DNA of 64,000 nucleotides from positions 48,670,001 to 48,734,000 of the forward strand of contig CM060733.1 in the NCBI GenBank assembly GCA_030704615.1, in the 5' to 3' direction. The notes under the pieces were generated by a model. It did not search any database. It worked only from the letters and a program-made list of their open reading frames with translations, and was not told the DNA's origin. Shown in pieces: positions 6,980 to 62,400 of the stretch. Position 1 is the stretch's first letter. Each line of letters starts with the position of its first letter. The position numbers were made by a program, and so were the translations under genes. Source of the stretch: Takakia lepidozioides. Its lineage: Eukaryota > Plantae > Bryophyta.

Positions 6980-7587
6980 CCGCAAGCTTGATTCCTAGCT
7001 TGTTTCCCTGCACAAATAGGGAAGTTTACTAGGGCTCAGTTTTTTTTTTTTTCCTAAACAAATTCCCATGTGCCAATAGGGGTTGGGATTAAGCTTGCGT
7101 CAACGCCAGCTTGATTCCCAGCCTAGTTCCATGCACAAACAGGGCAGTTTGCTAGGGCTCAGTTTTTTTATTTTTTTAATTTTTTTCTTTGTGAATTTCC
7201 ATGTGCCAACAGGGGCTGGGATTAAAAGCTTGCGTCAACGCAAGCTTGATTCCCGGCCTCTTTCCCTGCACGAATAGGGCAGTTCGTAAGGCTCAAGTTT
7301 TTTTTTTTGGAATTTCCATGTGCCAACAGGGGTTGGAAATCAAGCTTGCGTGGCACATGGGAATTCCCCAAAAGAAACAAAAAAAAGAAAGAAAAACCTG
7401 AGCTTGCTTCGTAGCCTATTAACCTGCACGAACAGGGCAATTTGCTAGGGCTCAGTTTTTTTTTTTTTTTTTTTTTTTTGGGTTGGTTTTTGAATTCCCA
7501 TGTGCCAACAGGGGCTGGGATTAAGCTTGCGTCAACGCAAGCTTGATTGCCAGCCTCTTTCCCTGCACGAACATGGCAGTTTGTAAG
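6980..7587. repeat. Palindromic ~125-bp tandem array with poly(T) tracts; left part, interrupted by the MULE
   Basis: Unit: AGGGCAGTTTGCTAGGGCTCAG(T)n..ATTCCCATGTGCCAACAGGGGCTGGGATTAAGCTTGCGTCAACGCAAGCTTGATTCCCAGCC..CCCTGCAC, about 5 copies. Confidence 0.85.
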
Positions 7588-7912
7588 GCCTCTCATTTTA
7601 AGATAATAGGGTCTTCAATGGGCACGTGCGATGTGGCCGGTGGGCCCCACGCACAGACGCCCGGCTCCCCAGCACCCCGCCCGCCGCTGTGCGCGGTCGC
7701 CCAGCCACGGGCGCGGGTGCAACAACCGCGCCCGCGCCCCCGTCCGCCGCGCGGCCAGCCCCCCGCCCACGAGTCCGCTGCCCTCTAGTCTGCCAGTCCG
7801 CCAGTCTGCCCGCCAGTCCGCTGGCTAGTCCCCTGCCATCCAGTCTGCTGACGGCGCAGGATCGCCACCGTCCATTCCCATAACCCATCCGAGCCCTCCA
7901 TTTTTAGGGCTG
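7588..7912 (+). repeat. Left terminal inverted repeat of the MULE (GC-rich)
   Basis: Reverse-complement match to 24388-24684, running to CCATCCGAGCCCTCCATTTTTAGGGCTGC. Confidence 0.92.
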
Positions 7913-9406
7913 CGAAAATGGCAATGATCTTCCCACCAAATCCCGGCCGCTCTCTTTTGACGGCTGTTTGTTGTCCGATGTTGCGGTAGGCGTTCCATGC
8001 ACGCGACTGTTCCTCTTTTGCGCGCGATGTTCATGATGATGATGAAGCGTGTGCTTGAACATGAGAGGACTGTCTCGGCACTACAGCCACCATCGTGCAT
8101 ATGCTTCCACTATTTTGCCTTCTTGTTGTGCTTTCGGGAACCTTCGTTTTATGGTTTGGTTCTATGTCATAAATATGGAAAATGCGGACATCTGTCGTCG
8201 ATAACGTCCTCTGCTTGTGATCCGTCATGATATGTTTAGCCCCTTCGTACTGCATCCCTCATGAGAGCCTTCACAAGTTTAGTTCGTTAAAGGAACCCAT
8301 GGGTAACATGGGCGCGAAAATGGTGGAAGCGTATGCACATGGGGGCGTGTATTGCAGAGTATCGGACGATGGGACTGTTTATGTGACCAAGTATAGCGGC
8401 TTGCATCCGTCGTGCTTAAGTTGTGGAAAATGGTGGAGAATCTGAAGAAACCCAGCTTTGTGATGGATCCACATGGTATTATATAAGGGATGGCAACACA
8501 AAAAAACAATTCGAGTCGTCACGGAACATCATCCAGTCGTAAGGTCCTCAAACATCCACACCTTCCTGCTGAATGCAAATGTCTGAGCCACGACGGGAGA
8601 TGTCTGAGACAATTGCATCTGCAAATGCGCGTGGATGTTTGAGGTCCGTTGTGTCGCGAGTCTGTTCACAGTGGGTCCGCTGGCCCGTCAGTGCTCCGGA
8701 TATTCCCCTTATCGCGTGCATAACAGTCAGTTTGGAGGCGGTCTGCTGGAAGTCCGTCTGTTGGGATATCAGTCTTTTGCACTTGTGAATTTGTCAGTCT
8801 GTTGTGTTGGAAGTCTGTTGCACTAAGTCTATTTGACTTCTTATTTTCCCTTCGGTCAGTCTTTTGGCTTGTTCTCCCGCCAGTCTGGCGAAACGTCTGT
8901 CTGCTAGACAGTTCTCCTCTATGGATATCAGTCTGTTGGACTGTGCATGCATCAGTTTGTTGTGCCGCGAGTCTGTTTGCAATGGGTGTGTTCGACTTTC
9001 CTGTTCTCCCCTTACTCTCTTTTGTCTTCATTCCGCTAGCAGGGAAGTGCCTCCAATATGAAGCCGCTTCACCTCAGCAAAGCGAATAGTCCGCTGGACT
9101 GGCGTTCCGGTGGACTCTCGGCCCGATGGGAAATGAGTTTGCTGCACTTGCGAGGAGCGTGGATGAATTTAGTATGATGCGTTCGTTCGGTGGACGTATT
9201 CAATGCGATGACGACGGATAGTTGGTGCCTGTGAAATCGCGCCACGTTGGCAGTGCCATGCCCGCTTTTCCCCCTTCTACTTCTACTTTCTCCATTCTCT
9301 TCGCGCCTGTTTCTTCGCACAGTTTTGCACTGTTTTGTATTCCTCTTTGCGTTTCCATCACCGTAACGAAAGACGACCGTTCTTCCCCAGGTGTGGAGAG
9401 TCGCGG

Positions 9407-10127
9407 TGTCGCGGCCCTTTGCCTTGAGGGCAGGGGGTCGGGACACATGAGGGGCTGCCCCTGTGGGGCAGCGGCAGCGATAGGTATGGGGGGCTGAAGC
9501 ACCCTTGAGTGCCCAAGGCACTCAAGGAGGCGGAGGCGCTCACTAGGTGGAGCCCCGCACACCGGGTTGCGGTGGGGGTGGCTCCACAAGGGGTGGTGGT
9601 AGCTTAGCGGGACTTAGTGGGGGTGGCATAGGACTCACCATGGGGGCGGAGACCTCGTGGTGGGAGTCGTGGGGAGTCTTGGGACTCATCATGGTCCATA
9701 GGGGCCGTGGTGAGTGGGCCAAGACTCACCGCGACTCATCACCGGGAGTCGAGGTTTTCGTGGTGGTTCGCCATAAAATGGCATGGCTGGTTGTGAAACC
9801 CCCGCGGACAGCTACAGAAGTATATATAGAGAGTAGTAACCCCGAGAAGGGTGCAAGCCCGTTGGTGACCAAAAACTAGTGAGTAAGCGAGCGAGCCGGA
9901 AAGCGACCAAAGAGTGGGGAGCTGTTCCGGACTGCCATCTACCAAAGGGAATTCCACTAGTCCCAAATAGGTGGAGGGTTTAGTGGGAAGCGAAGGGGGG
10001 ACCGTTATGTCCCGGTGAGCAGCCGAAGCTCCAAGTTGGCCCGGCGGCCAGGTTGGGAGTCAGGCGCGCGCATCAAAGCGAGTAACTATGACGTGAAGGG
10101 GAGCTTACCGAAGGGAGGTGCGCGACA
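9407..10127 (+). repeat. 5' LTR of the chromovirus
   Basis: TG...CA ends with 7-bp inverted termini; nearly identical to 15617-16342; TATATATAG near 9821. Confidence 0.95.
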
Positions 10128-10129
10128 CT

Positions 10130-10141
10130 TGGTATCAGAGC
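10130..10141 (+). promoter_or_regulatory. Primer-binding site, tRNA-iMet
   Basis: TGGTATCAGAGC 2 nt after the LTR end. Confidence 0.95.
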
Positions 10142-10182
10142 TTAGAGTTCAGTACGCGATCGTCCTTGGGATTGGCCTCATA

Positions 10183-13100
10183 ATGGGGTCGGGCAAACCA
10201 AAGCGAAAGCGGAACGGCCCAAAAGATGATGATCCTGGTGAGCCCGATGGGGGCGACGTGTCACCGAGGCGGCCGTTTGAGGAAGCGATGAATGTTTCCA
10301 AAAACGAGGCCGCTCAAGAGGGAGGAATCCGAGGAGTCGGAGCCCGAGGAATCCTTGAGAGCTCCGACAAACCAAGAGATGCCTCCCATGCCGGCAGCCT
10401 TTCGGGAAGGGTTGTTGGCGCAGTTTGGCGGGACGTTGAAAGACGTGTTGAAGGCGGCTAATGCCACTTCCACTAAGGCAAAGTTTAAGGTGAAGCCTAA
10501 GGAACCCGGCACCTTCGAGGGCGTTGAAATCGGAAGGCACTCAACACCTGGCTCCTGGAGCTAGAGCAGTACTTCCGGGCGGCGAAGTTGAGTGACGAGG
10601 ATCGGGTGGAAGTGGCTCCCACCTATTTGAGGGGCTATGCTCAACAATGGTGGCAAAAACGCCTTCACGACCGAGGCCCAAGCCCGGAAACCTTGAACTG
10701 GAGTGGGTTCAAGGAATTGATGAAGAGACAGTTTGTGCCCCTCAACGCGTCCTGGCTTGCCCGGGACAAGATGAGGAATTTGAAGCAAACAGATGACATT
10801 CGGGGGTATGTCCAGGCTTTCAATGTGCTGTTGCTCGAAGTCGCGGACATGGCAGAACAGAAATGGTCTTCAACTTTGTGGCGGGACTGGCCCCATGGGC
10901 CAGGCGGAAGTTGGAGGAGAAGCCACCCAAGACTTTGAACGAGGCAATTGAGAGGGCTGAATGTTTCTCGGATGTCCCTAGGGGTGAGAGACAAGGCCGT
11001 ACGGAGCTGAACCACAAGAAGACCCGGCGGGAAGGTGACTCCTTCCGACCGGAAAAGAAGTGGGATAGGCCACGCGGCGACAATGGCACGTGGAAATCGA
11101 AGGGAGGGCCTTCACACGTCAAGGCGGCACCCGGTGCTTCGAAAGGAAAAGCGGGGTGGAGCTTATGGCGGACAGAAGGCGACCTTTGATGGAGTGTGTT
11201 TCAATTGCGGGGAGCCCGGGCACATGGCCAAGAAGTGCACAAAACCTCGACAATTGAACATGACTCGAGACGGAGCTGTCGGAAGATACCATCAGTCGCT
11301 TTGGTGGAAGCGGTGGTCGCCAGGACTTGCAAGGTAGGCAACTATTCTTGTGAGTTGTATCAGGAAACTGGCGCCCTGCGTAAAGGGAGTCAGTTATTGT
11401 TCGTGGATGGGATAATATCCGAACTAATGTGTCGTTGTTGGTGGACACAGGAGCGTCGTCGCACTCCTTCATGACACCGGCGGCGGCGCGAAAGTTGGGA
11501 CTCCCGACAAGTGACGTGGGGCCTCTATTGAGGTGCGTTCTGCCAAAGGAGAACCACAGTTGGCGACAAGGTTGGCGTTTGATGTTCCTCTTCAACTGGG
11601 GAGTTGGGAGGGACGTGAGAACTTCACCATCTGCGAGATCGATGGAGTGGATCTCATTTTGGGGATGACCTTTTTGAGCAAATCCGGAGCGGTCATAGAT
11701 GGCCGCAAGAGAGTAGTCACGCTGCCATGTGGGAATGGTGGCGAGGTTTTACGAGTGTCGGAAACGCCCAAATCCGTGGGAGGGCGAATAAACCTTCTGT
11801 CAGAAAGGGAGTGGGCCGTGGAGGAGGCACACGAGCCCCAGTTTTTGCTTTACATTAGAGAAGTGAAGGGAGAAGGCGATGGGGAGCCGAGCCCAGATTG
11901 GATCAAGGGGATTTGGAGAAATACCAGGATGTGATGCCGGAGGATTTACCAAGCGGCTTGCCACCGCGAAGAGGAGTTGACCACAAGATTGAGGTGATAT
12001 CGGGATCGGAACCGCCTGCCAAGGCACCCTACCGGTTGAGCCACAGGGAGTTGGTCGAGCTGAAGACTCAGCTCAAGGATCTAATGTCAAAGGGGTATAT
12101 CCGGCCGAGTAAGTCACCTTACGGAGCCCCGGTGCTATTCGCAGACAAGAAGGATGGGACGCTGCGGATGTGTGTCGATTACAGGGCTTTGAATAAGGTG
12201 ACTATTAAAAACCGGTTTGCCAAGGATCCCTTGCCAAGGATACCTTTTCGATCGGTTGGCAGGAGCGAAGTATTTCAGCCGGATCGACTTGCGCTCCGGC
12301 TATCATCAAATTCGGGTGGCGGAAGGAGATGAGAGAAGACCGCGTGCAGGACAAGGTATGGTTCATATGAGTTCTTGGTGATGCCTTTTGGGCTCACAAT
12401 GCACCGGCGACCTTTAGCACGCTGATGAACAACCTTTTCAGGAGTGGTTGGATGACTTTGTGATCGTGTACATCGACGACATCTTGGTGTACTCGAAAAC
12501 AAAGGAGGAGCACCTGGAGCACCTCAAAAGGGTGTTCCAAAAGTTGCGGAAGGGAAGCTATATGCCAAAGCTTCAAAATGCGAATTCGGGGTCACGAAAG
12601 TGGAGTTCTTGGGGCATGTGATTACACAGGATGGGATCAAAATGGATGACAGAAAGTGAGGGCGATCTTGGACTGGGAGCCTCCGACTTCGGTCCCGGGA
12701 GTGCGATCCTTCCTAGGACTCGCCTCCTATTACCGGAAGTATGTGAGAAATTTCGCCAAGATCGCGGGGCCGCTGTCGGACCTTCTGTGTAAATCCAAAG
12801 TCTGGGTATGGAACACATTTGTGGCCAAGCTTTTGCTGAATTGAAGCAGCGGATGGCGGAAGCTCCAGTCTTGAAAATCCCGGAGTTCGATCGTCCATTT
12901 GAGATTCATACAGATGCGTCGGACTTCGCGATTGGGGGTGTACTTATGCAAGATGGACGTCCAGTGGCTTACGAAAGTAAGAAACTGAATGAAGTGGAGC
13001 GACGGTGGCCGACGCACGAAAAAGAGATGAAGGCGGTGGTGCACTGTCTTGAGCTTTGGCGCCACTATGTTGGTTCCAACCCAGTGAAGGTGTTCACGGA

Positions 13101-14717
13101 CAATGTCACGGTGAAGTATTTTGCCACGCAGCCCAAGTTGTCCCCAAAACAACTTAGGTGGCAAGATACTTTGGCGGTGTTCGACGTGGATATCCAGTAC
13201 AAACCGGGACGAGACAACGTGGTGGCCGATGCTTTAAGTAGAAAGCAGCAGCTTGTTGGTGTACAAGGGCGAGACGGCGCTCCAAAGGAAGATCCGGAAG
13301 GCTTGCCGGAAGGATGAGTTGGAAGTCCGTGATGCAGGACTTGAGAATGGGGGTTAAATCGCAGTTCCACTTGCAAAATGGACTGCTCCGGTATAAGCAA
13401 AAACGCTCTACGTGCCGAAGGGAGGGATCAGAGATAGCCTCTTGAGAGAATGCCATGATAGCCCTTGCGGGCCACGGCGGAGCCAAGCAAGCGCACTGCG
13501 GCACTCTTGAAGAAAGAGTATTTCTGGCCCAAACTGAGGGAGGAGGCAGAGGAGTATGTCAAGACATGCACCACATGCCAACAAAACCGGAGCGAGTAAA
13601 AAGCAAGCGGGGCTGTTACAACCCTTGCCGATTCCAGAGGGGACTTGGGAAAGCGTCTCGATGGATTTCATGACTGCTGTGCCGCTGTCAAAAGGATTCG
13701 ATGCAATCATGGTGGTGGTGGATAGGTTCAGTAAAATGGGCCATTTCATCCCCACCAAGGAGACGGCAACGGCGCAGGAGACAGGGCGACTTTACTTCGC
13801 CCACGTTTTAAAGCATCATGGAGTCCCGAAGGATATTGTCTCGGACCGCGATCCAAAGTTTACGAGTAAATTCCTTTGGAAGAAGATGGGGACGAGGCTG
13901 AAGATGAGCACCGCCTTCCGACCTACGACCAACGGCCAAACAGAAAGAGTGAATTCCGTAGTGAAGCAGATCTTGCGGAATTACGTGTCGGCAGACCAAA
14001 CAGACTGGGTGGAACACTTAGACGCGGCAGAGTTCTGTATAATAACACAGAACACTCCGCACGGGAGTTTCCCCTTTCGTATTGGTCTATGGAAAAGCAC
14101 CTCTGGTGCCGACAAGTTGGGCCGCCCAGGACGTTGAGGAACCGGCAGTAGCGGCGGTACTGGAAGAACGCGAGCGTTTGTTGAAGCTCGCAAAGTACAA
14201 CATTGCCAAAGCTAGGAAACGGTATGAAAGGCAGGCGAATCGGAAGCGGAGGGAAGTGAAGTTTGAGGCAGGCACAGAGGTCTGGTTGAACATCAAGAAT
14301 TTTCGACTACCTCCGGAGTGAGTCCGAAGTTCGTACCTCCGTATGCGGGCCCCTTTCGCATTCGGAAGGTTTATGAATGAGGATGTGTATGAATTGGAGC
14401 TGCCGGCAAACAGCAAGGTGCACCCAGTATTCCATGTCTCCCTTTTGAAGCCTTACTTCAAAGATGAAGCACGTCCGAATCGGCATCAAGTGTTGCGTCC
14501 GCCACCTATGCTGTTGGATCATGAAAATGAACCTGAGTACGAGGTGGAGGCAATACTTAAGTCGAGGAGGTTCAAGAACCGAGAAACGGAGTATCTCGTC
14601 AAATGGAAGGGCTATCATCATGTGGAGGCATCTTGGGTGCGTGCCTCAGAAATGGGAAACGCATCCGAGGCGGTTGCAGCTTTCGAAGGGCGACCTCAAA
14701 AGCGAAGAAGAAGTTGA
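10183..14717 (+). pseudogene. gag-pol polyprotein with C-terminal chromodomain, broken by many frameshifts in this assembly
   Basis: YLRGYAQQWW (gag), [46 protein letters not shown] (~12470-12495), [74 protein letters not shown]. Start codon approximate. Confidence 0.9.
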
Positions 14718-15616
14718 TGGGGACATCAACCTTGGAGCGTGGGGGAGGAAATGCATGCTTAGCCCGGCTTAGCTAGCTAGGAATCCGATTGCAAAAACTT
14801 GTATTGTACAAAATTTGCTATAAATGAAATGGATTCCAAATGTTGTGCGTCCTATTTTGTTTGGAATGGTGATGCATGGTATGGTTGGCTAGTGTGTAGA
14901 ATGCATGCTAGCTTATAAAAGTGGGAGAGGTAAATTGTCATGTGTTTGTGTAGTGCCGAAATCGGGTGACCCCCATCCGAGGGGTAAGGAAACTTGCGCC
15001 TTCTTTGGGAGTTCACGTGCTAGTGCGCACCTGGCGCGTGCGCGTACTATAACTGCGCTACCGAGGGGGTTGCCTTGTAGTGGGCTAACGCGGAAGCCAC
15101 GTGCTTCCGTTCACGTACTATAATCGTGTAGCCTCGGGACGAAGTCGTAGTGCGGCTTCGGCGTGTTCCCGTACCTCAGGCCAGCATTCCAAGGCGGACC
15201 CAATTGTAGTGATTGGGGCGCACGGTTGGTTCAAGGTTATCTTCCTAGTCAAAGAGGGTTCCAGGTGAACCCTTGCTCAAGGTGATGCCAAAAGCGGCAT
15301 CATGAGCGGTCGCAAGCAATGTTGTTGCAGTAAGGCGATTCGATCCTCAAGGAGGATCGTTCCTTGGCCTTGAAGTAGGCCAAGAAGAGTGCACTGGGAG
15401 GAGCTGGAGAGGCTCCACCCTTGGCCGGGACTTGGAGGAAGTCGGCCGCCGAACTAGCTAGTGGAGAGTAGAGTCAAGTGTGGGGTTTGGTTCTTTGCCA
15501 TGGGACGCCATGGTGCGGAAACAAACTCCTTGATGTGGGACGCCACAACTTGGATGTTCGTTTCTACAAAATGGACAAGTCGATGAGGACATCGACTCCC
15601 TGTTGGTAGGGGTGTG

Positions 15617-16342
15617 TGTCGCGGCCCTTTGCCTTGAGGGCAGGGGGTCGGGACACATGAGGGGCTGCCCCTGTGGTGGGGGCAGCGGCAGCGATAGGTA
15701 TGGGGGGCTGAAGCACCCTTGAGTGCCCAAGGCACTCAAGGAGGCGGAGGCGCTCACTAGGTGGAGCCCCGCACACCGGGTTGCGGTGGGGGTGGCTCCA
15801 CAAGGGGTGGTGGTAGTAGCTTAGCGGGACTTAGTGGGGGTGGCATAGGACTCACCATGGGGCGGAGACCTCGTGGTGGGAGTCGTGGGGAGTCTTGGGA
15901 CTCATCATGGTCCATAGGGGCCGTGGTGAGTGGGCCAAGACTCACCGCGACTCATCACCGGGAGTCGAGGGTTTCGTGGTGGTTCGCCATAAAATGGCAT
16001 GGCTGGTTGTGAAACCCCGCGGACAGCTACAGAAGTATATATAGGGAGTAGTAAACCCGAGAAGGGTGCAAGCCCGTTGGTGACCAAAAACTAGTGAGTA
16101 AGCGAGCGAGCCGGAAAGCGACCAAAGAGTGGGGAGCTGTTCCGGACTGCCATCTACCAAAGGGAATTCCACTAGTCCCAAATAGGTGGAGGGTTTAGTG
16201 GGAAGCGAAGGGGGGACCGTTATGTCCCGGTGAGCAGCCGAAGCTCCAAGTTGGCCCGGCGGCCAGGTTGGGAGTCAGGCGCGCGCATCAAAGCGAGTAA
16301 CTATGACGTGAAGGGGAGCTTACCGAAGGGAGGTGCGCGACA
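15617..16342 (+). repeat. 3' LTR of the chromovirus
   Basis: Matches the 5' LTR; followed by TSD CGCGG. Confidence 0.95.
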
Positions 16343-16541
16343 CGCGGTGAGCCGCGAAGCGTCGCAAACACGCTCGCCTTCGTAACAACTCGAAGTTCAT
16401 CGGCTCGGTGAGGTTCTCACTTGCTGCGGTGTTTCCATTCCATTCTTTGTCCTCTTCCTTCTTAGGGTGAGTCTTTTCATAGGACTTCTATCTGTCGCTC
16501 TGTCGCTCATTGTCCTTGCACCTTTGTTTCATTCTGCAGCG

Positions 16542-19500
16542 ATGGAGGATGCTTGTGAAAAGGGTGGAGCGGACTGGTTGGATTGTGTGCACCAAACCAG
16601 ACTGAAGAAGGAGCGAAGGTACTGGTACTCACCAGACGAGTTTGATCATAAAATAGTGGAAGCATTTGTAGACCTCCGCGCCCGGAAGCCTAAAAACTCG
16701 AATTGGCAGAAGGACAAGCTCTTCTGTCCCTTCTGTGAAGAGGTAATCAAGGACAAAGTCCAACTAAATCGGCATTGTGTTGACACGGGTTGCAAGGAGA
16801 CTGTTGCAATAATTCCACGGGATTTCAAGCCTTGGCTGATACTGAAAGAAATGTCGATTGTCAAAGAGGCCACAATGCGCTTGCACGGATCAGTGCTTGA
16901 CCCCCGCACTTTGGAATTAGACGAAGTGCGCGCACGGTATGGCGTCCATTGTGGTGGCCCGTCAATGGAGGATTTGCAAGTGCAGGGAACGCCGGACGCT
17001 CCCAGAAAACGTAAACTGAGTGATGGGGCCCAAAAAAAGGAGAGGCAAAAAAGGAGAAGGCTGTAAGGTCTGCTCGCGAGGCAAGGGCAAAATCCACGCA
17101 ACAGACTGAACCCCATCCTGGGCGGCAGACCCACACCATCAGTACTGATACTGAAAGTGAATCTGCTCAGGGCCTGGAAGGGGTGACAAGTCCAGTGGAC
17201 ATTGACTTGCCTGACCAGACTCGGCAGCAGACTCACACAAATGTCGCGACCCATGCCATCGGTTTAGGGTCAAAACCAAAAACTCAACAGAGCACTGAAG
17301 GGCCAGTCTGCCCTGGCACATTGCGCCTCGTTGACTTTGGGCTTTTCCCACAAGAGTGCCCACCAATTGGGGATCCAGACTTCTTCCGTTATTTCTACAA
17401 AGTTGCCTAGTCAGGTCTGCTATGCACATTCATCTGACAGGCGGAACAGAACTGGTTGAACAGCTTTGAAGATGAAGATGACGATGATGAAGTAGAGGAG
17501 GTAATGGTCAGTTTGACCGCCCAGTCTGTTCTCTGTGCTGTTTGAGTCCATCATCGGGTTCACGTTGCCTATTCAGTCTGGTCAGTCCGCTGCGTTCTCT
17601 CCTCAGTCCGCTGGCTCACTCCGCACGTCAGTTAGTCTGTTTTATATCGCTACATTACTTACTGAGTCCGTTTGTTAGTCCGCTGGTCCAGTCCACTGGT
17701 ATAGTCTACTAGTTGCCTCCACCCTACGTACGCACGTTACAGTCTGCTGGTCTGTGAGTCCAGTCCGCTGCATGAGGTGAATATAGAGTTCACGTCCATG
17801 TTCCTGACGTCGAAGTTATTTGCCGTGTACCAGGATGAACGAGTTTCTATTCGTAGGGCCATTCAGGCTTGGCGGATACCTAGCAATGATGCTCCTTTAC
17901 AAGCGACTGCAGTGCGTGCGGAAGTGGACCGCGTGCGAGAGTACATATTATTGAAGTATCCTGGGTCATCTGCTGCTATAGCAGCATTACATATTCAAGA
18001 CACGTCGGGGGGGAATGCGTCTGGGACAGCCGAGTCTGCCATCCAGCAGACTCCCATTCAGCAGGCCGTCATCCAGCAGACTCCTGTTCAGCAGCCTGTC
18101 ATCCAACAGACTCCAACGGAGCAGACTCCCAACGAGCAGCCTGTCATCCTGCAGACTCCTCTCCAGGAGCCCATCATGCAGCCCATGCCAATGGGAAGTC
18201 CTGTCATCCAACAGACTGCCGACCAGCAGACTGCTTTTCTCTTACATAGCACGGCGCTTTTTGCAATTTGGCGATCGCCATCACCGGTAATTCGACCCGG
18301 AGCTGAAGACCTCACACTTCCCCAGCTTGGGAGAAATTAATCCCCATTTGGATTGGCATAATGAGCTCCACCGGATTGTTGCGGACCGCCGGTGGTCATT
18401 TGTACCCTTTCATTATTCCATGGAGTTTTCTATTGATGAAGCCAACCATGTTCTAGAAGCCGCCTGTGCTGTTGCCATTGAAGCCACAAGCGACCAAAAT
18501 GCGTCGCCTCTACTTGTGCAGCTGATTCTCATGGATGACCCACGGCCTGAAGACCTCAGACATATGCCTATGGCACATCCAACCTTTGGGGTGCGAAGAA
18601 AGCACTTGTTCAGATTGACTGAGGAGGACTTTGAGCGCATGGCAGCTTCCTTCCTACAACACAGATGGATGCAATTTGGCAATTTCCGCTCATACAACAA
18701 GTTGATGAAGGATCTGCATAGTTTGAGGATGGACTTACTCCATGGAACAGACCATTCACAGAAGTTTGTGGTCGATGACGCATTGCACTGGTTTGCATTG
18801 GTGATGGAGCGAGCAGTATTCGACATTATTTTGCAGAATCCCAATGTCTTCAAAGTCCTGTGGTGTGGGATCCCAACTGAAGACCGCATCGGCGCCATTG
18901 CTCATCTCGATGGAGCATGCCTGTGCCGGCAAATCAAGGACATTGGCCTCGTCGGAAATCTCTTGGAAGGTAAAATGTTATGGGCAACTTTCGTGTTTCA
19001 GCTCAATTTCTTTTGCCAATTTTTTTACAAGTTCACATTTGCATAAACATGTGTTGCAGGGCGAGTTGATCTGGGAGACAAACAAGTGCAGGCTGCTTTT
19101 GACTCTTATGCCAGAGGTGCAAGGGACCTTGTCCTGGCTTTACAAGGAGTTTGGGAGACTGTCCAGCAGACTGGCCACAAGAATGTCGAACAACATATTC
19201 CCACGACACATGTGGGCAGACTGCCCAAGTGCTGGAGACCGAGCATGTGCACCAGACCGTCCCGGGTAATAGGCCGGATCACTCCCAGCAGACTGCCCCG
19301 CACACACATACTCAGTATGTGCAAACAGTACTGAGCGGGTAGCAAACTTTGCAGACTTTGCAGCAGACCCGAGAACAGACCGGCCAACAGACTGCCCCTC
19401 AGCCGACTGTGCAGCAGACCAGCAAACATGGCCACCAGACTGTCCCTCAGCAAACTGTATAGCAGACCGTGCAGCAGACCAATGAATCCAGCTAGCAGAT

Positions 19501-20161
19501 TGCCCCTCAGCAGACCGACGAATCCAGCCAGCAGATTGCCCCTCAGCAGACCGTGCAACAGACCGACGAATCCAGCCAGCAGATTGCCCCTCAGCAGACT
19601 GTGCAGCACACTGGCGAACCCACTCAGCAGATGGCCGAGCAGACTATCCAGGAGACTAACAGCCAGTCTGTTCCCTGGATTGTGCAACAGACTCGGATGC
19701 ACTGGCCTCACCGGGACCCTGTGGACGAATTTCTATTGAGTTCCCAACAACATGTTTTTGGATCTGCCAGTTGGGGCTGTTACACTCACCTGAACTCTAT
19801 CAGGGACTTGCATAAATGTCTCTTTGTTCTAGGGTGGATTCGGAAACTTCATGCGTAGTGCTTAGGGTACTCGATGGACTCACCAGAGTGGCATGAGATT
19901 GTCCAAGCATTTCAGTTCCACGCGCCTGATGTGCCCCAGCAACCATTCAGCTGGGAGGGTGGCTTTTACGTCATGTCATTCATTCAAGTGTTTTATGAGT
20001 GGGTAAAAGTCAGAGCAAATGTCTCAGAGACTGCAAAGCCAGAGAGAGGAACACCTTTCACGAAGGACTGGTTTACTTTCAAGTTTGCACTTGGGCAGCG
20101 AATGCAGTGTGCCCAGTATATCGTGCGGGGGTTGGACAATTTAGAGAAACTGCTCTCATGA
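16542..20161 (+). CDS. MULE accessory gene (spliced/frameshifted): C2HC zinc finger, NLS, acidic tract, Gln/Thr repeats and degenerate ULP1/C48-like domain
   Basis: ORFs 16467..17066 (CPFC-x12-H-x5-C; PRKRK, KKERQKRRR), EDEDDDDEVEE before a GT donor at ~17501, 17777..18340, 18327..19046, 18844..19269, 19553..19858 and 19874..20161 (VPQQPFSWEGGFYVMSFIQVF...FTKDWF). Exon joins are inferred; this could be two genes. Confidence 0.6.
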
Positions 20162-20699
20162 GTATGATGTATTTGTCCTGTGAAGTCTATGTACCGAAAT
20201 AAAAAATGCGAGTCTTTTCGCTTACTATTCCAGTGGTGATGAGCACTTTTGTGTACTGTGGGTGCTGGCATGTTTTGTAATGTTGTCACTAAACTCAATG
20301 GACACAATGGTGTCAATTTTTCCATGCACTGTGCACCCGAGTCTGTTGAGCTTGAATGTGCGAGCAGTACGCAGCCGAGGCTAGGACTGCTGGGTCTGGT
20401 ACCTAGTCTGGGAGGCACCATGTCCATGAGTCCGCTGGGACGCTGATTGGCATAAGTTGCAGGGATGAGGTGGAAGTGTGGTGAGCAGACTTTTGGAGTG
20501 GGCAACAGACTGACCAGCAGACTGGCTTATTGGCGCTCGCAGTCTGTTGACTGTGACTCTGTTGGGAGACTGTGCGTGAGTCCGTTGGGAGACTATGCTT
20601 GGGAGACCGTTGGGGAGTCAGTTGGGAGACTGGAGGAGTCCGTTGGGAGACTGTGCATTAGTCCATTGCGGACTTGTATTTCAGAAAGGGACAATGCTA

Positions 20700-20900
20700 C
20701 CAGAAGAATTGCAGACTTATATTGTTTTCTGTGTGACACCTACACGACATGAAACCTTGTCTCTTTTCGAGGAATTGCAGACTTATATTGTCTTTCCGTG
20801 ACACCTACACAACGTGAAACCTTGTCTCTTTTCGAGGCATTGCAGACTTATATTGTCTTCTTCGTGACATCTACACGACCTGAAACCTTGCGAATTTTCG
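20700..20900. repeat. Three ~62-bp tandem repeats between the convergent MULE genes
   Basis: TTGCAGACTTATATTGT...GTGACA.CTACAC.AC.TGAAACCTTG at ~20709, ~20775 and ~20840. Confidence 0.85.
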
Positions 20901-21026
20901 AGTATATATGTGCTGCAGGTGCAGGTGCAGACACCATCTTGCTGGTTCTCCGCAAAACCCTAGGCCGGGTTTTCCAGGCCTCCACGAAATCTCGTCTCAT
21001 TTTCAGAGACATGTTGTTGTTGTCAT

Positions 21027-24000
21027 TCAGAGGACGGAAAGCCTTCGCTGCCGCAGGTACAACATTCCAGCCGCACTTTTCGCCAGGATATCAACGAGCT
21101 GCCCTCTGCACATATGAAGAGCAGATCGGGCATGTGTCTCCAGGTATTTGTCATCACCTACAATGCGAAGTATGTCCGCGAATTCTTGTTCCAATGAGGC
21201 TGAGACCTCCAGAGTTGCCTCGTCGTAGGGGAAGTCATCCGGAGGATGTCTTTCCATGAACTGATTGGATTCGTCGTTGCCGTCGGCACCATTGCCCAAG
21301 AGCAAGTTAGGTAATCCTCCATGCATGGTTCCTAGCGTCGTGCCACAAGCGCGCACAAGGAGGCCATCTTGCAGGTCAGGGTGAAGCATCTTCAGGACAC
21401 GGACCTGATGCTTGCATAAGTTTCCCTTCATTGCTCATGGGCACGTGCAACAACCCCAATCGCAATCAGGATTGTAAACAATGTATGTTGTGCCGGGGGG
21501 GGTTGCTGCTGAGAACGTAGGCTGGTTCACCATGACCCAAGGGAAGAGTAACACTCTCAGTAGGAATGTCTCGTGCCGCAAGTATAGAACTGGATATGTA
21601 CTTTTCGTGTTTGTCATTTCTTATGAACCCGTGGGTCTTCAAATGGATTGCGTACCAATAGTGTGTTAGCACACGACCAGTGAGTTCCCATATAAGCCAG
21701 TCCACTCTACGACCACTCATCTTGCCTTTCCCCATGGCAAGTCTTGCCTTCAGATTTCCATGGTATGCCTCAATGCTTGCGTTTGTGCCTTGGCTCGCAT
21801 GAGGGACATGGCGGGCTGCTGTACACCACATTGCTATTTTGGGCTTCCAGTACTGTTCAATATAGTCAAGAAATTCATGTCCTTTCGGGTATTTTGACCT
21901 CATACGACGGATTCTCCTTGCAACCCACCGAAGCGCTCTTTTCTCGTTGCGTGGTCCCCATCTACAGTACATGAGGTCTCCCATATCCTTCAACAAGTTT
22001 ACAGCGGTCACCGGGTCCTTCGTTTTCTTGCGTGATTGCTTCACCCATGCCTTGCGGACATGCCAAAGGCAGAGGAAAATGAGTACTCCTTCAAAAACAA
22101 TTCTGCACAACACACATGGTACACATTAGAGTCTTGGGATCGGACTGCAATGGTGAACTGCCGGAGTGGAATGTAACAGCGACCTGTATCAGCGGGTAGA
22201 GCCACTGGACTCGCCCAGTGGACAGTACAATGCCATGACGTTGATGTGCTGGAATATAACCCCATTGGACTACCCAGTGGACTTCCCCATTGGACTTCCC
22301 CTAGCTAGGACTGGGGCAGCGGACTGCATCAGCGGACTGCCCCATTGGATTGCCACAGCGGACTTGTCAGGGACTGCCGAGTGGACTTGGCAGCGGACGG
22401 CCGACCCCAGGGACTGCTGAGTGGACTTGGCAGCGGACTTGCCGGGGACTGCCAGCGGACTTGCCAGGGGACTGATGACCGGACTTGACAGCGGACTACC
22501 AGTGGATTTGCCCAGCAAACTGCCATCAGGGTTTGCCACATGAGTCTGCCAGTGGACTGTAGCAATGGACTGCTGCAGTGGACCTCGACAATGGACCGGT
22601 GCTGTGGACCAACAGACTTACCGAATAACGTTGATTTCTGCTTCGACATCGTCCACAATGAAGGCATTGGGTCGCCAGCTCGGCAAATCTGCAAGGAGTG
22701 AATCGCGCAAGGCTCTCATCCACGGAACCAGGTCTCTTGTCCGATTCCTCGCGGATAGGATATAGGCAACTGGTATACTGTTCAACCACTCGTCGAAGAC
22801 CATCAACGTGTACAATGGGAACTGTTGGAATGCACAATGTAAGATGGTCAGAGCATGCAAATTCCGCTCAGTTCTGCACGAGAAGACTTCATAAGAGTGA
22901 TGAGGTCTGTAGCGGTTCACAATGGGTCTGCCTCTCGGTCTTCCGCAACGTACACAACCCTAAACATACAGAAAGAGTCAGCACACCAAATATTATGTGA
23001 ATGTTGCATGGTACTATGCTATCATGCTCGTACAAGTTCATGGAATCGTTCGAATAGTACCTTGTCATGATTTGTCCCAAAGGTTGCATCACATGCAACG
23101 ATACGGTCATGTCCTAGTTCCAACATTCGTCGTTTCTGCCACGGAGTCTGTATGCCAATAGTGAATGTCAAATCTCCATCAAAATGCTCGAATGTTGGCT
23201 CTAATTTCTCCTCTTGATAGAGAAAAACGGACGCAGGATTCTGGTCTCTCCACATGCGTACACTCTCTACATCATCGGCGTGCTTTTTGAAGGTTTGCCA
23301 CGCACGTTTCTCGGCAAGGTTGCGAACATCTTGCTCCAACAAGAAATCATCGCGGGTCCATGCATCGCCCAAGCCGGTGTTGTTCATCACGTGCTCTTTA
23401 TGCTCCATCATGATTGGGACGACCGACAGGCCTCGGCACAAACACTCGACGACCCAGGCTTTCAATTCCTTGCTAATGTGGTGCATAGGCGTGGCGGGTG
23501 TTCCTGAACTCTGCGGACTTCCCATGCAAGGGTTTCCCTTGCGCATCTGTATGCTCCATGTTGTTGTAGTACGTGAGGATACAGATGTCAGGGGCGAGAT
23601 AGCATTGCTGGACCTTGAAACAGCATTGGCAACCACATTTGTAAGACTCTCCATACTCCGACTTCTTTCTCCTTGGGCCTTTATGAGGGCAAGATGTTCC
23701 AGCACCCACAAGAGGTCCTCCACGCTTCTGTTTTGGATCCTCCACTATTGTCTTGTTGGTGCGCTTGTCATCAGGACCGTAGCAGCATTGATACTGGACA
23801 GAAAATTCTAAAATCGATATCCAACGACTTGAGGAAGCATAAAATCAGAGAACTCGTGAAACAAAAAATGGCAACAGACATGCAATGTGAAACGTCAAAA
23901 GGACTGAGGATGGTGCACACATAATACTGGACAGAAATGTGTTGGCTCTGGGTGCTTTTCGCAAGCCGGGTTCCACTTTAGAATGGACATTCACCCAAAA

Positions 24001-24243
24001 CTGAGTGGGGTAGTCCTCCAAACTCTCCTCTCCCAGGACGAAGTCACCAACTCTATCCCAAGATATGCAGGCTTTTTCAACATTCACTCGCACACCCATA
24101 AACCCATATTGCATCTCACTCTTCCAATGGAGATCCTTCCTGTTGAAGGGTCCTGGTTTTGCTGTTTGCAAACATTGTCGAAGAGGCCGTATAAGCGGGC
24201 TTTCCGTGATTAGTATATCATCGGGTTTTGCTTCCACGTCCAT
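21027..24243 (-). CDS. MULE-type DDE transposase with SWIM finger, At4g13970/At1g60560-like; 4 exons, a few lesions
   Basis: Exons ~24243-23921, 23793-23061, 22821-22622, 22102-~21027. Motifs YQCCYGPDD, KCGCQCCF..H, GIQTPWQ, DATFGTN, FIVDD, CLWHVRKAW, TNASIEAYHGNLK, CTCP..KGNLCKH. GT-AG at introns 2 and 3; intron 1 phase needs a 1-nt correction; frameshifts near 23475 and 21500; TGA (likely from TGG) at ~21436. Confidence 0.88.
22160..22615. repeat. ~12-bp GGACT-core minisatellite in transposase intron 3
   Basis: Runs such as GCGGACTTGCCA GGGGACTGCCA GCGGACTTGCCA GTGGACTTGGCA. Confidence 0.8.
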
Positions 24244-24387
24244 GCCCTATACAATACAAAGGACACGCTTCTGAACATGCAAGAAACGCGCCGCAGTACA
24301 AGACACGATCGACAACGTGCCAGGAAAACAGTGCGCACGTTCGCGGCTGCTGGCAAGTGGTAGGCGACAGGGATGTAGGTTTGAATT

Positions 24388-24684
24388 GCAGCCCTAAAAA
24401 TGGAGGGCTCGGATGGGTTATGGGAATGGACGGTGACGATCCTGCGCCGTCAGCGGACTGGCAGGCGACTGGCGGACTGGCAGACTGCTGGGCAGCGGAC
24501 TGGCAGACTGGAGGGCAGCGGACGGGGCGTGGGCGCGGTTGCTGCAGCAGCGCGCGCGGCTAGGCGACCGCGCGCAGCGACGGGCGGGGGGGCGGGGGTG
24601 CGGGGAGCCGGGCGTCCGTACGCGGGGCCCACCGGCCACATCGCACGTGCCCATTGAAGACCCTATTATCTTAAAATGAGAGGC
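24388..24684 (-). repeat. Right terminal inverted repeat of the MULE
   Basis: Reverse complement of 7588-7912 with small indels. Confidence 0.92.
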
Positions 24685-25045
24685 GTTTGTAAGAGCTCAG
24701 TTTATTAAAAATAAAAATAATTTTTTTTCCCATGTACCATCAGGGGCTAGGAATCATTGAACCTTGCGTCAACGCAAGCCTGATTCCCAGCCCCTGTTGG
24801 AACATGGGAAATCCAAAAAAAAAAAAAAAAAAACTTGATTCCCAGCCTGTTTCCCTGGGGCCTGCACTTGAGGGCAGTTCGCTAGGGCTCAGTTATTTTG
24901 TTTTCTTTGAATTCCCATGTGCCAACAGGGGCTGGGATTAAGCTTGTGTCAACGCAAGCTTGATTCCTTGCCTATATCATTGTACAAATAGGGAAAATTC
25001 CTAGCTGGATCTCTATTTTACTTTCTCGAATTCCCGTTTGCCAAC
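24685..25045. repeat. Continuation of the palindromic ~125-bp array right of the MULE
   Basis: Same unit and orientation as 6980-7587, resuming at GTTTGTAAG-AGCTCAG(T)n. Confidence 0.85.
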
Positions 25046-38800: not shown

Positions 38801-39327
38801 CTCAACGGCTCGCGCACTAAGGCAGTAGAAAGGAGGCCTAGTATTCAAAAAACACACCAGAATCAGTGACGAGGCGCACATTTCTCGCCACAACTGCTCG
38901 GTTGATGCGGCGATCGCCCTTGTCAGGCCCCAGCTTTTCCCCCTTGCCGTCTCCGGAAGCGTTCCCAGTTCTGCTCTGCACGGAGATCCAGGTCAATACA
39001 AACCTGCAAATCCACATGCTCTAAAACAGCTTCTGTCTCCAACGTGCATCAGGATGGCAGAAAGGAACACCAACGCAACAGAGCATTCATTCCCGAAAAG
39101 CGGAAACGTAACTAGCCCCAATCGATAAGAAAGAGGAGTCTGCATACAAGTGGAGCAGCATAAAATCTCCAAACGCGCCAAGTATGCGGCACTGGTGGTG
39201 CTGGTGAAGGAGCTGCGCTACTAGCAACACCACCACGAGCCAAGAGACCGCAATTTGCTTTGTGGCAGCTCACTCCCGAGTACTGCGAGATGAATGCCAC
39301 CAAACGGGGCCATGTCCGCGGCCGCAT
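35884..39327 (-). CDS. Translation initiation factor IF-3, mitochondrial type (~8 exons)
   Basis: Spliced: MRPRTWPRLVAF.. (presequence-like), RINRAVVARNVRLVTDS-GHEILTRFEALNRA..LDLVE-VDGRADPPVCKLMDF..K, LKEVRFSTRT-EQKDLELKAEIASRLLTRGHRIK-VVVQS..-LEKITKVENGPRVEKHRAWVLLRP, then an acidic tail. Confidence 0.9.
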
Positions 39328-39331
39328 CTCC

Positions 39332-39363
<32 letters not shown>

Positions 39364-39807
39364 ACTCACAAGACCTCACCTTCCCCCATCGCAGTTAGAA
39401 ACACAAGCTTCCATGGCGACAGACAGCCTTGGTGAAGAAGAAGACAAGTTCACCAGACAAAACCTCGCCGTCACACCCCTCTGTGGATTCGAACCCAGCA
39501 CCAATAGACTCCTGGCATTATCAGCAGCCTCCAGATATAAGGTCCGGTCCAACCAAATGATCCCACGTGTAAAATTTATGAATTAACTGGGATTGTTCGG
39601 TTATAATATAATGTTTAGGAGGAAGGAGAAGGAGAGTGTCGTCGTCGTCACGAGCTCCGAGGGCCATCTCCTTCGCAGCGAAGAAGAGAGCTTGAACGGA
39701 GCTTTGCTTCGTGTGTTTTTGGAGCTCGAAGGAGCTTCGTTGTGATCGCAAGAAAGAGAAATAGAGGAGAAGTAGGAAGAGGGAGTGCGAGGAGAGCCCT
39801 CCCCATC

Positions 39808-54726: not shown

Positions 54727-54798
<72 letters not shown>

Positions 54799-54938
54799 CC
54801 TCTCTCTCTTTGTATCAAGGTAAGTCACACTGCTGGAGTGAGCCCCTCACAAAGGTAGTACCTATTCCCTGTGTTTCTGTCCAAACTGGGTGTGGGATCT
54901 TTGGCCACAAGGCTACAGCAAACAAAGTGTTATGAGTA

Positions 54939-59143: not shown

Positions 59144-59475
59144 TCAGGCTACTAGCCCCTTTCGGGTGTGGGCTCTGTTAAAAAAGCAGGCAAAGCCTAC
59201 AGGTGTCACGGGGACACGGGGTAACCAAGGGATAGGGGTACCTAGGGTACCGAGAGGGGGTTGGATTCTATTTGCCGCTTATTAGTAATAATAGTTATGA
59301 GGGAGCAAAGCGCCGTGAGGCGGATTGCCTTGAAGCATTTATAGATATGAGAAATAGAGATATTAAGTTGTGTATTGCGGTAATACTGGCATTGTGGATG
59401 CCACATCTAGTTCCAGCAATGATAACAGTTAGTGGGCCGGTGTTCCAACCTCGTTGGCAAATTGTGAGGATGACT

Positions 59476-62400
59476 TGTCGCGCACCTCACTTCGGTAAGC
59501 TCCCCTTCATATCATAGATACTCACTTTGATGCACGCGCCTAACTCCCAAACTGGCTGCCTGGCCAATTCGGAGCTTCGGCTGCTCACCGGGACATAACG
59601 GTCCCCCTTTGCTCTTCCACAAGACCCTCGTTCACTTTGGGCCTAGTGGAAACTCCCTTTGGTTGTTGGCAGTCCGGAACAGCTCCCCATACCTTGGTCG
59701 CTTTCCGGCTCACACGCTTACTCACTAGTTTTTTGTCACCAACGGGCTTGCACCGTTCTCGGGGTTACTACTCCCTATATATACTTCTGTGACTGTCCGC
59801 GGGGGTTTCACAAACAACACCGTCTTTTTATGGCGAACCACCACGAAGACCTTTGACTCCCGGTGATGAGTCGTGGTGAGTCTTGGCCCACCCACCACGG
59901 CCCCAATGGACCATGATGAGTCCCAAGACTCCCCACGACTCCCACCACAAGGTCTCCACCCCATGGTGAGTCCTATGCGACCCCCACTAAGACCCACTAA
60001 ACTACCACCACCCCTCGTGAAACCACCCCCGCCGCAACCCGGTATGCGGGGCTCCACCTAGTGAATTCCTCTGGCTCCTTGAGTGCCTTGGGCACTCAAG
60101 GGTGCTTCAGCCCCCATACCTATTGTTGCCACTACCCCCATCACAGGGGCAGCCCCTCTTGTGTCCCGACCCCCCTACCCTCAAGGCAAAGGGCCGCGAC
60201 ACACACCCCTACCAATAGGGAGTCGATGTCCTCGTCGACTTGTCCATTTTGTAGAAACTAACATCCAAGTTGTGGCGTCCACATCAAGGAGTTTGTTTCC
60301 ATACCATGGCGTCCCATGGCAAAGAACCAAACCCCCACTTGACTCTACTCTCCACTAGCAAGTTTGGCCGACTTCCTCCAAGTCCCGGCCAAAGGTAGAG
60401 CCTCTCCAGCTCTACCCAGTGCACTCTTCTTGGACCACTTCAAGGCCAAGGAACGATCATCCCTGAGGATCGAATCGCCTTACTGCAACAACATTGCTTG
60501 TGATCACTCATGATGCCACTTTTTGGCATCACCTTGAGCAAGAGTTTACCTTGAACCCTTTTTGACTAGGAAGATAACCTTGAACCAACCGTGCGCCCCA
60601 ACTATTACAATTGGGTCCACCTTGGAATGCTGGCCTGAGGTACGGGAACACGCCGAAGCCGCACTACGACTCCGTCCCGAGGTTACACGATTATAGTACA
60701 TAAACGGAAGCACGTAGCTTCCGCGTTAGCCCGCACTACAAGACAACCCCCTCGATAGCGCAGTTATAGTACGCGCACTAGCACGTGAACTCCTAAAGAA
60801 GGCGCAAGTTTCCTTGTCCCTTGGATGAGATTCACCCGATTTCGGCACTGCGCAAACACACGATTAATCCAATTTACCTCTACCACTTTTATAAGCTAGG
60901 ATGCATTCTACACACTAGCCAACCATACCATGCATCACCATTCCAAGCAAAATAGGACGCACAACATTTGGAAATCATTTCATTTATAAACAAAATTTGT
61001 ACAACACAAGTTTTTACAATCGGATTCCTGAGCTAGCTAAGCCGGACTAAGCATGCATTTCCTCCCCCACGATCCAAGGTTGATGTCCCCATCAACGCTT
61101 CTTCAGCTTCTGAGGTCGCCCTTCAAAAGCTGCAACCGCCTCGGATGTGTTTCCCATTTCTGAGGCACGCACACAAGTTACTTACACTTGATGATAGCCT
61201 TTCAATTTCACGAGATACTCCGTTTCTCGATTCTTGAACCTCCTCTACGTAAGCACTGCCTCCACCTCGTACTTAGGTTCATTTTCATGATCCAACAACA
61301 CAGGTGGCGTATGCAACACTTGATGCCGATTCGGACGCGCTTCATCTTTTGAAGTAAGGCTTCAAAAGGGAAACGTGGAATACCGGATGCACCTTGTTGT
61401 TTGCCGGCAACTCCAATTCATACACATCCTCATTCATAACCTTCCGGATACGAAAGGGCCCCGCATACAGAGATATAAACTTTGGACTCACTTCCGGAGG
61501 TAGTCGAAAATTCTTGGTGTTCAACTAGACCTCCGTGCCTGCCTCAAACTTAACTTCCCTCCGCTTCCGATTCGCCTGCCGTTCATACCGTTTTCCTAGA
61601 TTTGACAATGTTGTACTTTACGAGCTCCAACAAACGCTCGTGTTTTTCCAGCACCACTGCTGCTGCCGGTTCCTCAACGTCCTGGGTGGCCCAACTTGTC
61701 GGCACCAGAGGTGATTTCCATAGACCAATACGAAAGGGGAAACTCCCGTTGCGGAGTGTTTTGTGTTATTATAACAGAACTCTACCGCATCCAAGTGCTC
61801 TACCTAGTCTAACTGGTCTGCCGACACATAATTCTGCAAGATCTGCTTCACCACGAAATTCACTCTGTCCGTTTGGCCGTCTGTTGTAGGTTGGAAGGCC
61901 GTGCTCATGTTGAGCCTCGTCCCCATTTTCTTCCAAAGTGTCCTCCAAAATTTACTTGTAAACTTTGGAGCGATTTAACCCCCAACCTCAAGTCCTCCAT
62001 CACGGACTTTGTCATCTCATCCTTCCGGTAAGCCTTCCGGATCTTCCTTTGGAACGTCGTCTCGCTCCTGTACAGCAACATGAGCTGCTGTTTTCTACTT
62101 AAAGCATCGGCCACCACGTTGTCCCGTCCCGGTTTGTACTGGATATCCACGTCAAACATTGCCAAAGTGTCTTGCCACCTAAGTTGTTTTGGTGACAATT
62201 TAGACTATGTGGCAAAATACTTCACCGTGACATTGTCCGTGAACACCTTCACTGGGTTGGAACCAACATAGTGGTGCCAAAGCTCAAGGCAATGTACCAC
62301 CGCCTTCATTTCTTTCTCGTGCGTAGGCCATCGTCGCTCCACTTCATTCAGTTTCTTACTTTCGTAAGTCACTGGACGTCCATACTGCATGAGCACACCC

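Follow-up and report, generated by a model that had tools for sequence, protein, structure and literature searches.

A 64,000-nucleotide stretch of Takakia lepidozioides DNA (contig CM060733.1, positions 48,670,001 to 48,734,000 of the forward strand), referred to below as the window, carries a spliced transposase gene within a Mutator-like element (MULE) measuring 17,097 bp (positions 7588-24684 of the window) from the end of one terminal inverted repeat (TIR) to the end of the other. The element is very probably a decayed copy of a multi-copy MULE and a collateral relative of the plant host genes typified by AT1G60560 and AT4G13970, both belonging to the same ancient MULE subgroup. Taken alone, it is an ordinary dead transposon from a new MULE family; its importance lies in the link to these host genes.

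Boundaries, transposase gene and decay of the element

The original prediction placed the transposase gene between TIRs of approximately 300 bp. Both arms are real, but they are 17.1 kb apart and do not adjoin the gene, which forms the right end of the element. The left arm (7588-7913, forward strand, ~326 bp) bears subterminal repeats of the type CAGTCYGC and the right arm (24388-24684, reverse strand) is ~297 bp in length. No TIR was found close to the gene when self-BLAST was limited to 17-28.5 kb; the arms surfaced in a search of the whole window as an inverted match between 7585-7913 and 24388-24687, with 79% identity over 338 nt. Alignment of the arms using MAFFT yielded a column identity of 83%, the first ~60 terminal bases being identical. 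The 9-mer GTTTGTAAG abuts the outer end of each arm as a perfect target site duplication (TSD) at 7579-7587 and 24685-24693, for which the chance probability at fixed positions is approximately 4e-6. Elements of the Mutator superfamily typically possess TIRs of 100-500 bp and a TSD of 8-11 bp, usually 9 bp, and the window element falls within the range for both.

Both flanks of the MULE belong to one array of palindromic units of ~130-190 bp each, at 6981-7592 and 24727-25045, that resemble miniature inverted-repeat transposable elements (MITEs). A search of the window for an empty site, allowing up to three mismatches, found no match; paralogous units were instead spotted by eye, those at 7125-7165 and 7258-7300 running uninterrupted across the equivalent of the insertion site and so providing an empty-site analogue. 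Given the TIRs, the TSD and the uninterrupted paralogous units, this is therefore a true insertion: the MULE landed within the MITE-like array and 9 bp were duplicated, in agreement with the earlier claim that the gene arrived by transposition.

With both strands counted, the MULE contains the heptamer CAGTCYG at a density of 3.6 per kb, versus 0.32 per kb outside it and 0.43 per kb in a retrotransposon nested within it. The heptamer makes up the TIR subrepeats as well as a minisatellite in the third intron of the transposase gene, and is dense at 17001-20000, in both TIRs and at 22130-22600.

A gene model was assembled from stop-to-stop open reading frame (ORF) pieces and from tblastn searches with full-length relatives; the window protein was searched, and placed in trees, as single exons rather than as a joined protein. 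All four exons lie on the reverse strand. Exon 1 (23921-24243) opens with an ATG at 24243 and carries the RVGDFVLGEE..PTQF block, the ORF being matched by the related proteins P0279 (Hibiscus) and P0027 (Riccia) from their residues 1-6. Intron 1 (23794-23920, 127 nt) is bounded by GT..AG, with donor AT/GTGTGC and acceptor CAG/TAT. Exon 2 (23061-23793) was delimited by alignments and encodes an N-terminal zinc-chelating block (YQCCYGP, KCGCQCCF, HTD..HG) and the first catalytic D, in DATFGTN. Intron 2 (22822-23060, 239 nt, GT..AG) is in phase 0 after FGTNHDK, and exon 3 (22622-22821), located by tblastn with P0008, P0027 and P0279, contains the second catalytic D, in FIVDD. Intron 3 (22103-22621, 519 nt, GTAAGT..CAG) falls in phase 2 within an Arg codon and is filled by a minisatellite of the type GGACTG, the length of which differs among copies through 12-nt insertions in others. 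Exon 4 (20965-22102; tblastn, acceptor TGCAG/A) encodes CLWH, the catalytic E in SIEAYH, the SWIM finger and a C-terminal tail.

DATFGTN, FIVDD, CLWH, SIEAYH and the SWIM residues CxC..CxH occur in order and in the same columns as in ~40 relatives, and CLWH supplies the C/DxxH that Mutator transposases carry between the second D and the E, though the frame is broken. The original prediction of a full Mutator catalytic set with a SWIM finger is thus borne out for the residues, but not for the reading frame. When full-length relatives were compared with Pfam, P0008, P0043, P0063 and P0069 scored 44-59 bits against the MULE family PF10551 (cut-off 27.6), and full-length relatives matched the SWIM profile just under its cut-off.

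Five lesions break the frame, namely four insertions or deletions (indels) and an in-frame TGA codon. Exon 2 lacks its first base (23793); two nucleotides are deleted at ~23477, between ..YAPH and ISKELK and outside any homopolymer; one extra G lies in the G8 run at 21488-21495; and one base is missing at ~21055, beyond which relatives go on for ~30 residues in another frame. The TGA at 21435-21437 stands in place of the SWIM Trp (CxCxW) found in all relatives. The annotated stop at 21027 is premature, relatives extending to ~20965.

Forms without the four indels occur in contigs from public sequencing runs of this species. Contigs of other copies have a base added at 23793 and at 21055 and a base dropped at 21495; at 23477 other copies are represented by the loose ends of a few contigs only, reading ..CACACATTAGC.. 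in this region. The existence of many other copies lacking each indel, and the position of one lesion in a G8 homopolymer, where errors are typical, could be taken to mean that the copy is intact and autonomous and that its frame breaks are errors of assembly or sequencing. That is highly improbable, since the lesions are five in number and independent of one another, a substitution to TGA and a 2-nt deletion away from any homopolymer being among them, and since some of the contigs of run X1, possibly the source sample itself, keep the window state at 21495 and 21055. The 6.9-kb nested retrotransposon and the divergence of the TIR arms to ~80% identity likewise argue against errors. The five lesions leave the copy without the uninterrupted frame of an active element, and it bears the nested retrotransposon in addition. 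The window copy is a dead, non-functional pseudogene.

The course of events would have begun with insertion of the MULE by cut-and-paste into the MITE-like array with duplication of 9 bp; afterwards a long terminal repeat (LTR) retrotransposon would have struck the element and the transposase gene decayed. An intact transposase of this type is predicted to combine a DNA-binding block at the N-terminus that chelates zinc, a DDE core of RNase-H-like type with CxxH and a SWIM finger at the C-terminus, and, judging from the family, would excise and reinsert the element as in MULEs.

Copies and mobile relatives

A single DNA run of the species yielded 3837 contig pieces of 88-99% identity over 3.85 kb spanning the gene and a TIR. 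As earlier proposed, the family is a real transposon, TIR-bearing and multi-copy rather than a single captured copy; this copy of it is dead. In runs X7 and X8, tagged 'RNA?', two contigs (2.3 kb and 0.85 kb) match the GIQTPWQ stretch alone (23124-23221; 78-98 nt, ~88-91%) and then diverge; they may represent a transcript, either from a paralogue further removed or from a host-type gene that the species possesses.

The closest proteins (P0001, P0002 and P0004) came from ENA, JGI and Logan assemblies. The P0002 gene, on contigs L001 and L002, is flanked by inverted repeats of 470-550 bp, and convergent genes lie downstream of it, as in the window. L002 contains an element of ~10.5 kb with clear TIRs of 550 bp, for which no convincing TSD was found. 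No convincing TIRs were found within 10 kb of the gene on Riccia L008 or Diphasiastrum L009, the latter giving one weak inverted match of 119 nt.

Exon 4 alone matched 483 proteins in a representative protein library. Among the full-length matches to this exon are Adiantum P0008 and a number of Riccia proteins. A Taxus protein represents a cluster of 18 sequences, identical at 90% or more, distributed over many chromosome-size records, a spread that suggests transposon-like behaviour.

Kinship with AT1G60560/AT4G13970-type genes

Exon 4 matched the angiosperm protein P0090, annotated as 'SWIM zinc finger family protein', with E=3.8e-14. Members of its family (clade A) share 71-88% identity from Magnolia and Nelumbo through the asterids, and one of them, P0279, is annotated 'like AT1G60560'. 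A tblastn search of the window with P0279 gave a collinear match over residues 1-607, and all sequence blocks that the original prediction gave as common to the window gene and the Arabidopsis proteins align in order with P0279, Adiantum P0008 and Riccia P0027. A second angiosperm family (clade B), of 700-1200 residues and often named 'zinc ion binding', is the sister of clade A.

Clades A and B retain D, D, E and the SWIM finger, and read W-R where the transposons read C-x-W-H, in agreement with the original prediction that CxxH is absent from the Arabidopsis pair. A third eudicot clade (clade C; Cannabis P0442, Melia P0443, Syzygium P0446 and Glycine soja P0129), 46% identical to clades A and B, has H in place of the first catalytic D and retains CxxH in Cannabis, Melia and Glycine soja. 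The E has been lost in a divergent Amborella gene (P0133). The full motif set is retained in the window, in its clade and in the Riccia-874 type.

A further gene of this kind is 75-86% identical across liverwort classes (Riccia, Marchantia and Calypogeia; P0027, P0438 and P0439, P0438 being MPTK1_8g13000). It reads ..W-Y in place of CxxH and possesses all four introns of the angiosperm host genes. No inverted repeats were found within 3 kb of the Marchantia gene (locus L006), nor any flanking the host loci L005, L006 and L007 within 2-3 kb on each side. The window gene departs from this host pattern in being bounded by TIRs and a TSD, in being multi-copy, in its CLWH and in having no fourth intron.

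Intron positions were determined by mapping annotated proteins exactly onto their own loci, using one gene for each of angiosperm clades A and B. Hibiscus P0279 (clade A), Euphorbia P0341 (clade B) and Marchantia P0438 have four introns in common: the first interrupts, in phase 2, the codon preceding the conserved Y of YWCxxGP; the second lies in phase 0 before (Y/F)P..T.L; the third, in phase 2 like the first, interrupts the R codon that follows ..I; and the fourth lies in phase 1 after PK(I/L). The original prediction had put forward the introns of the window gene, all three of which have GT..AG sites where it placed them, as candidates for shared positions. Intron 2 of the window gene (HDK/FPLYTLM, phase 0) coincides exactly with host intron 2 and is also present in all five mapped relatives, and intron 3 (CG/GTAAGT..CAG/A, phase 2 in R) coincides exactly with host intron 3 and is also present in Riccia P0043. 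Intron 1 would coincide with host intron 1, in phase 2, once the extra base of other copies at 23793 is counted. No counterpart of host intron 4 was found in the window gene. The transposon-type P0043 of Riccia shares introns 2 and 3 and has a further phase-0 intron after CKHQ that is also present in Marchantia. At least two, and probably three, introns are common to transposon and host genes. The ancestral transposase gene was therefore already intron-bearing, and the host genes stem from a genomic copy rather than a retrocopy.

MULEs capture host gene fragments (PMC6446971), and the agreement of intron positions with those of the host genes would also be expected if the element were a Pack-MULE that had captured its own AT1G60560-like host gene, introns included, the 'transposase' then being cargo. 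This is most unlikely. CxxH is kept in the window gene, although it is lost in all host members of clades A and B, and host intron 4 is absent. The window gene does not nest in the host clade, as a single captured copy would, but falls in a separate clade and belongs to a multi-copy family, and its closest relatives elsewhere also lie between long TIRs. The gene inside the element is moreover homologous to transposases over its full length and carries their catalytic signature, and no second transposase gene was found among the ORFs of the element.

Relationships were examined using a careful tree of the exon-4 region (49 rows, 192 columns) and a quick tree of full-length rows (43 rows, 740 columns), in which the window row consisted of exon 4 only. 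In the careful tree the window gene groups with P0001 (98/95) inside a nine-row clade of environmental sequences from ENA, JGI and Logan (100/98), one locus of which is bounded by TIRs of 550 bp; this clade is sister to MULE clades of Riccia (91/92). Clade A pairs with clade B (100/97), and Amborella P0133 joins the pair (97/86). The quick tree joins clades A, B and C (99), then, stepwise, Amborella P0133 (91), Taxus and Cryptomeria (96), and Diphasiastrum with one Riccia gene (94); the window clade, the liverwort gene, the ferns and the Riccia MULEs form the group on the opposite side. Among the sequences compared, those of conifers (Taxus and Cryptomeria) appear to be the mobile relatives that stand closest to the angiosperm genes.

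These trees bear on the original suggestion that the window lineage is the donor family of the Arabidopsis gene pair. Homology over the whole length, introns 1-3 in common and the loss by the host genes of a CxxH that the transposon keeps would all agree with AT1G60560 and AT4G13970 having arisen specifically from the window MULE lineage, or with that lineage being their nearest mobile sister to survive. The host clades, however, join the conifer and lycophyte sequences (96* and 94 in the Shimodaira-Hasegawa-like approximate likelihood-ratio test) and not the window clade, which the exon-4 tree places as sister to the Riccia MULE clades, and an exclusive clade of host genes and window was rejected by the approximately unbiased (AU) test (p=0.0045). 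So specific a relationship is very unlikely. The part of the suggestion that stands is membership of the same MULE subgroup, with homologous sequence and shared introns, as a collateral relative of the host genes.

An exclusive clade of the angiosperm host genes and the liverwort gene was also rejected (AU p=0.00125); the conifer rows were outside this test, so that it does not settle between one and two domestications. The gene of the Marchantia MPTK1_8g13000 type may be an independent domestication from the MULE subgroup; otherwise the separate position of the liverwort gene would be an artefact of the trees.

An AlphaFold model of the transposon-type relative P0043, built from alignment A3, had a mean pLDDT of 72 with a core above 90. 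Its best match using Foldseek was the IS256-family transposase ISCth4 (probability 1.00, E=7.5e-6), followed by Hermes. The kinship of IS256 and Mutator is already known, and the fold match of P0043 agrees with it. An RNase-H-like fold of IS256/Mutator type is thus predicted for this relative, P0043, and not for the window protein. A sequence search of the PDB with P0008 found no match, and a search of the ESM Atlas gave rotifer and arthropod clusters only, which constitute a lead rather than evidence.

Several points weigh against the reading of the window element as a MULE collateral to the host genes. No Pfam family was reached by the single window exons because two introns divide the MULE domain and spread it over three exons, and the assignment of the window gene to Mutator draws on its relatives and on alignments. 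The window row in the trees amounts to ~190 residues of exon 4. Both trees are unrooted and contain no MURA, FAR1, MUSTANG, VANDAL or IS256 rows, which makes separateness from the classical MULE clades a provisional reading; in both, the deep branching order of the liverwort, fern, window and Riccia clades lacks resolution. Clade B is equated with the AT4G13970 type through transferred names only, 'zinc ion binding' being the TAIR description of AT4G13970 (PMC6265505). The evidence for splicing, in which related-copy contigs of two runs tagged 'RNA?' join exon 1 to exon 2, depends on a run label that is a guess. Binding of the intact transposase to the long TIRs, perhaps at the CAGTCYG subrepeats, is pure conjecture.

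Under the preferred reading, the transposase would represent a distinct MULE subgroup of liverworts, lycophytes, ferns and conifers, from which the angiosperm AT1G60560-type and AT4G13970-type genes would derive with loss of the CxxH histidine. Two uncharacterised, deeply conserved plant genes would then be descendants of a transposase, the mobile kin of which, bounded by TIRs and a TSD, persist in non-flowering plants. Such intron-bearing mobile relatives would allow the steps from transposon to host gene to be traced. The retention of the DDE residues and the loss of the CxxH histidine raise the question of what the host genes do; with a full DDE triad, nuclease or strand-transfer activity may persist in their products.

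Accessory sequences and comparison with known systems

The retrotransposon nested in the MULE (9407-16342, forward strand) is of the Ty3/chromovirus type and is a later insertion rather than part of the MULE. Its LTRs (9406-10128 and 15616-16343) are 98.4% identical, it has TG..CA ends and its own 5-bp TSD, CGCGG, on either side, and its ORFs, judged by eye, look like integrase, reverse transcriptase and chromodomain. The MULE minus this 6.9-kb insert measures ~10.2 kb. A second, inverted Ty3/chromovirus-type copy occupies the right end of the window (59469-64000), 12476-16344 being 89-96% identical to 61970-64000.

A second gene region (16467-20161, forward strand), defined by ORFs and Pfam, is convergent with the transposase gene and ends in a weak Ulp1/C48-like tail. 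The Pfam match of 19874-20161 to Peptidase_C48 is sub-threshold (E=0.1), and the position of the catalytic Cys is apparently not retained. The region also contains an ORF with a C2HC-like zinc motif, and Q/P-rich repeats with a low-complexity 'Extensin' match. Comparison of the accessory region of the window with L001, L008 and L009 using tblastx found no match. A unit of ~65 bp is present in three tandem copies at 20703-20925, just past the 3' end of the transposase gene, and a dinucleotide microsatellite occurs at two places, 54731-54806 and 39327-39367.

The window family resembles MULEs of the MuDR/MURA type in its long TIRs, its 9-bp TSD, its DDE catalytic residues with C/DxxH, its SWIM finger and the presence of a second gene in the element. 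It is unlike them in a transposase gene with three or more conserved introns and in the moderate match of its full-length relatives to the Pfam MULE family. Neither the MuDR DNA-binding domain PF03108 nor the FAR1 domain PF03101 was detected at E<=0.01 in ten full-length relatives, nor at E<=1 in the window exons.

A second gene with an Ulp1-like tail recalls the MULEs that carry C48/Ulp1, which include the KAONASHI type and 'C48-MULEs' (PMC4948706), although the C48 match in the window, as given above, is sub-threshold. The bacterial ISCth4 (PDB 6XGX and 6XG8), the best structural match of the P0043 model, differs from P0043 in its length of ~400 residues and in having neither a SWIM finger nor an N-terminal zinc block, and the two share 13% identity. 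Several relatives and a few AT1G60560-type proteins match PF21056 (ZSWIM1-3_RNaseH-like), the profile of animal ZSWIM1 and ZSWIM3, a likeness at the profile level only. ZSWIM1 and ZSWIM3 are themselves SWIM proteins derived from MULEs.

Two MULE-derived host gene families have been described in plants, FAR1/FHY3 (FRS) and MUSTANG (MUG) (PMC4948706). That the AT1G60560/AT4G13970-type genes, with ~70-88% identity across angiosperms and a full DDE, make up an unrecognised third is a tentative proposal, and somewhat more likely to fail than to hold. Neither gene is listed in the surveys of exapted transposable elements or MULE-derived genes that were examined (text and available supplements), the main Arabidopsis surveys included, but Hoen and Bureau 2015 was not covered, so that earlier recognition is possible; no mention of AT1G60560 or AT4G13970 in a transposon context was found in the literature searched. 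Like the FRS and MUG families, genes of these two types are conserved, lack TIRs, are of low copy number (inferred here rather than counted) and appear to descend from MULEs with mobile relatives elsewhere. The window subgroup is set apart from FAR1/FRS by the absence of PF03101, a distinction drawn from profile searches and not from a joint tree. Many FRS proteins differ in this respect from clades A and B, in which the three DDE residues are all present and just the CxxH histidine has been lost. The AT1G60560/AT4G13970-type genes would therefore offer a third case, beside FAR1/FHY3 and MUSTANG, in which to study how, and how often, MULE transposases become domesticated.

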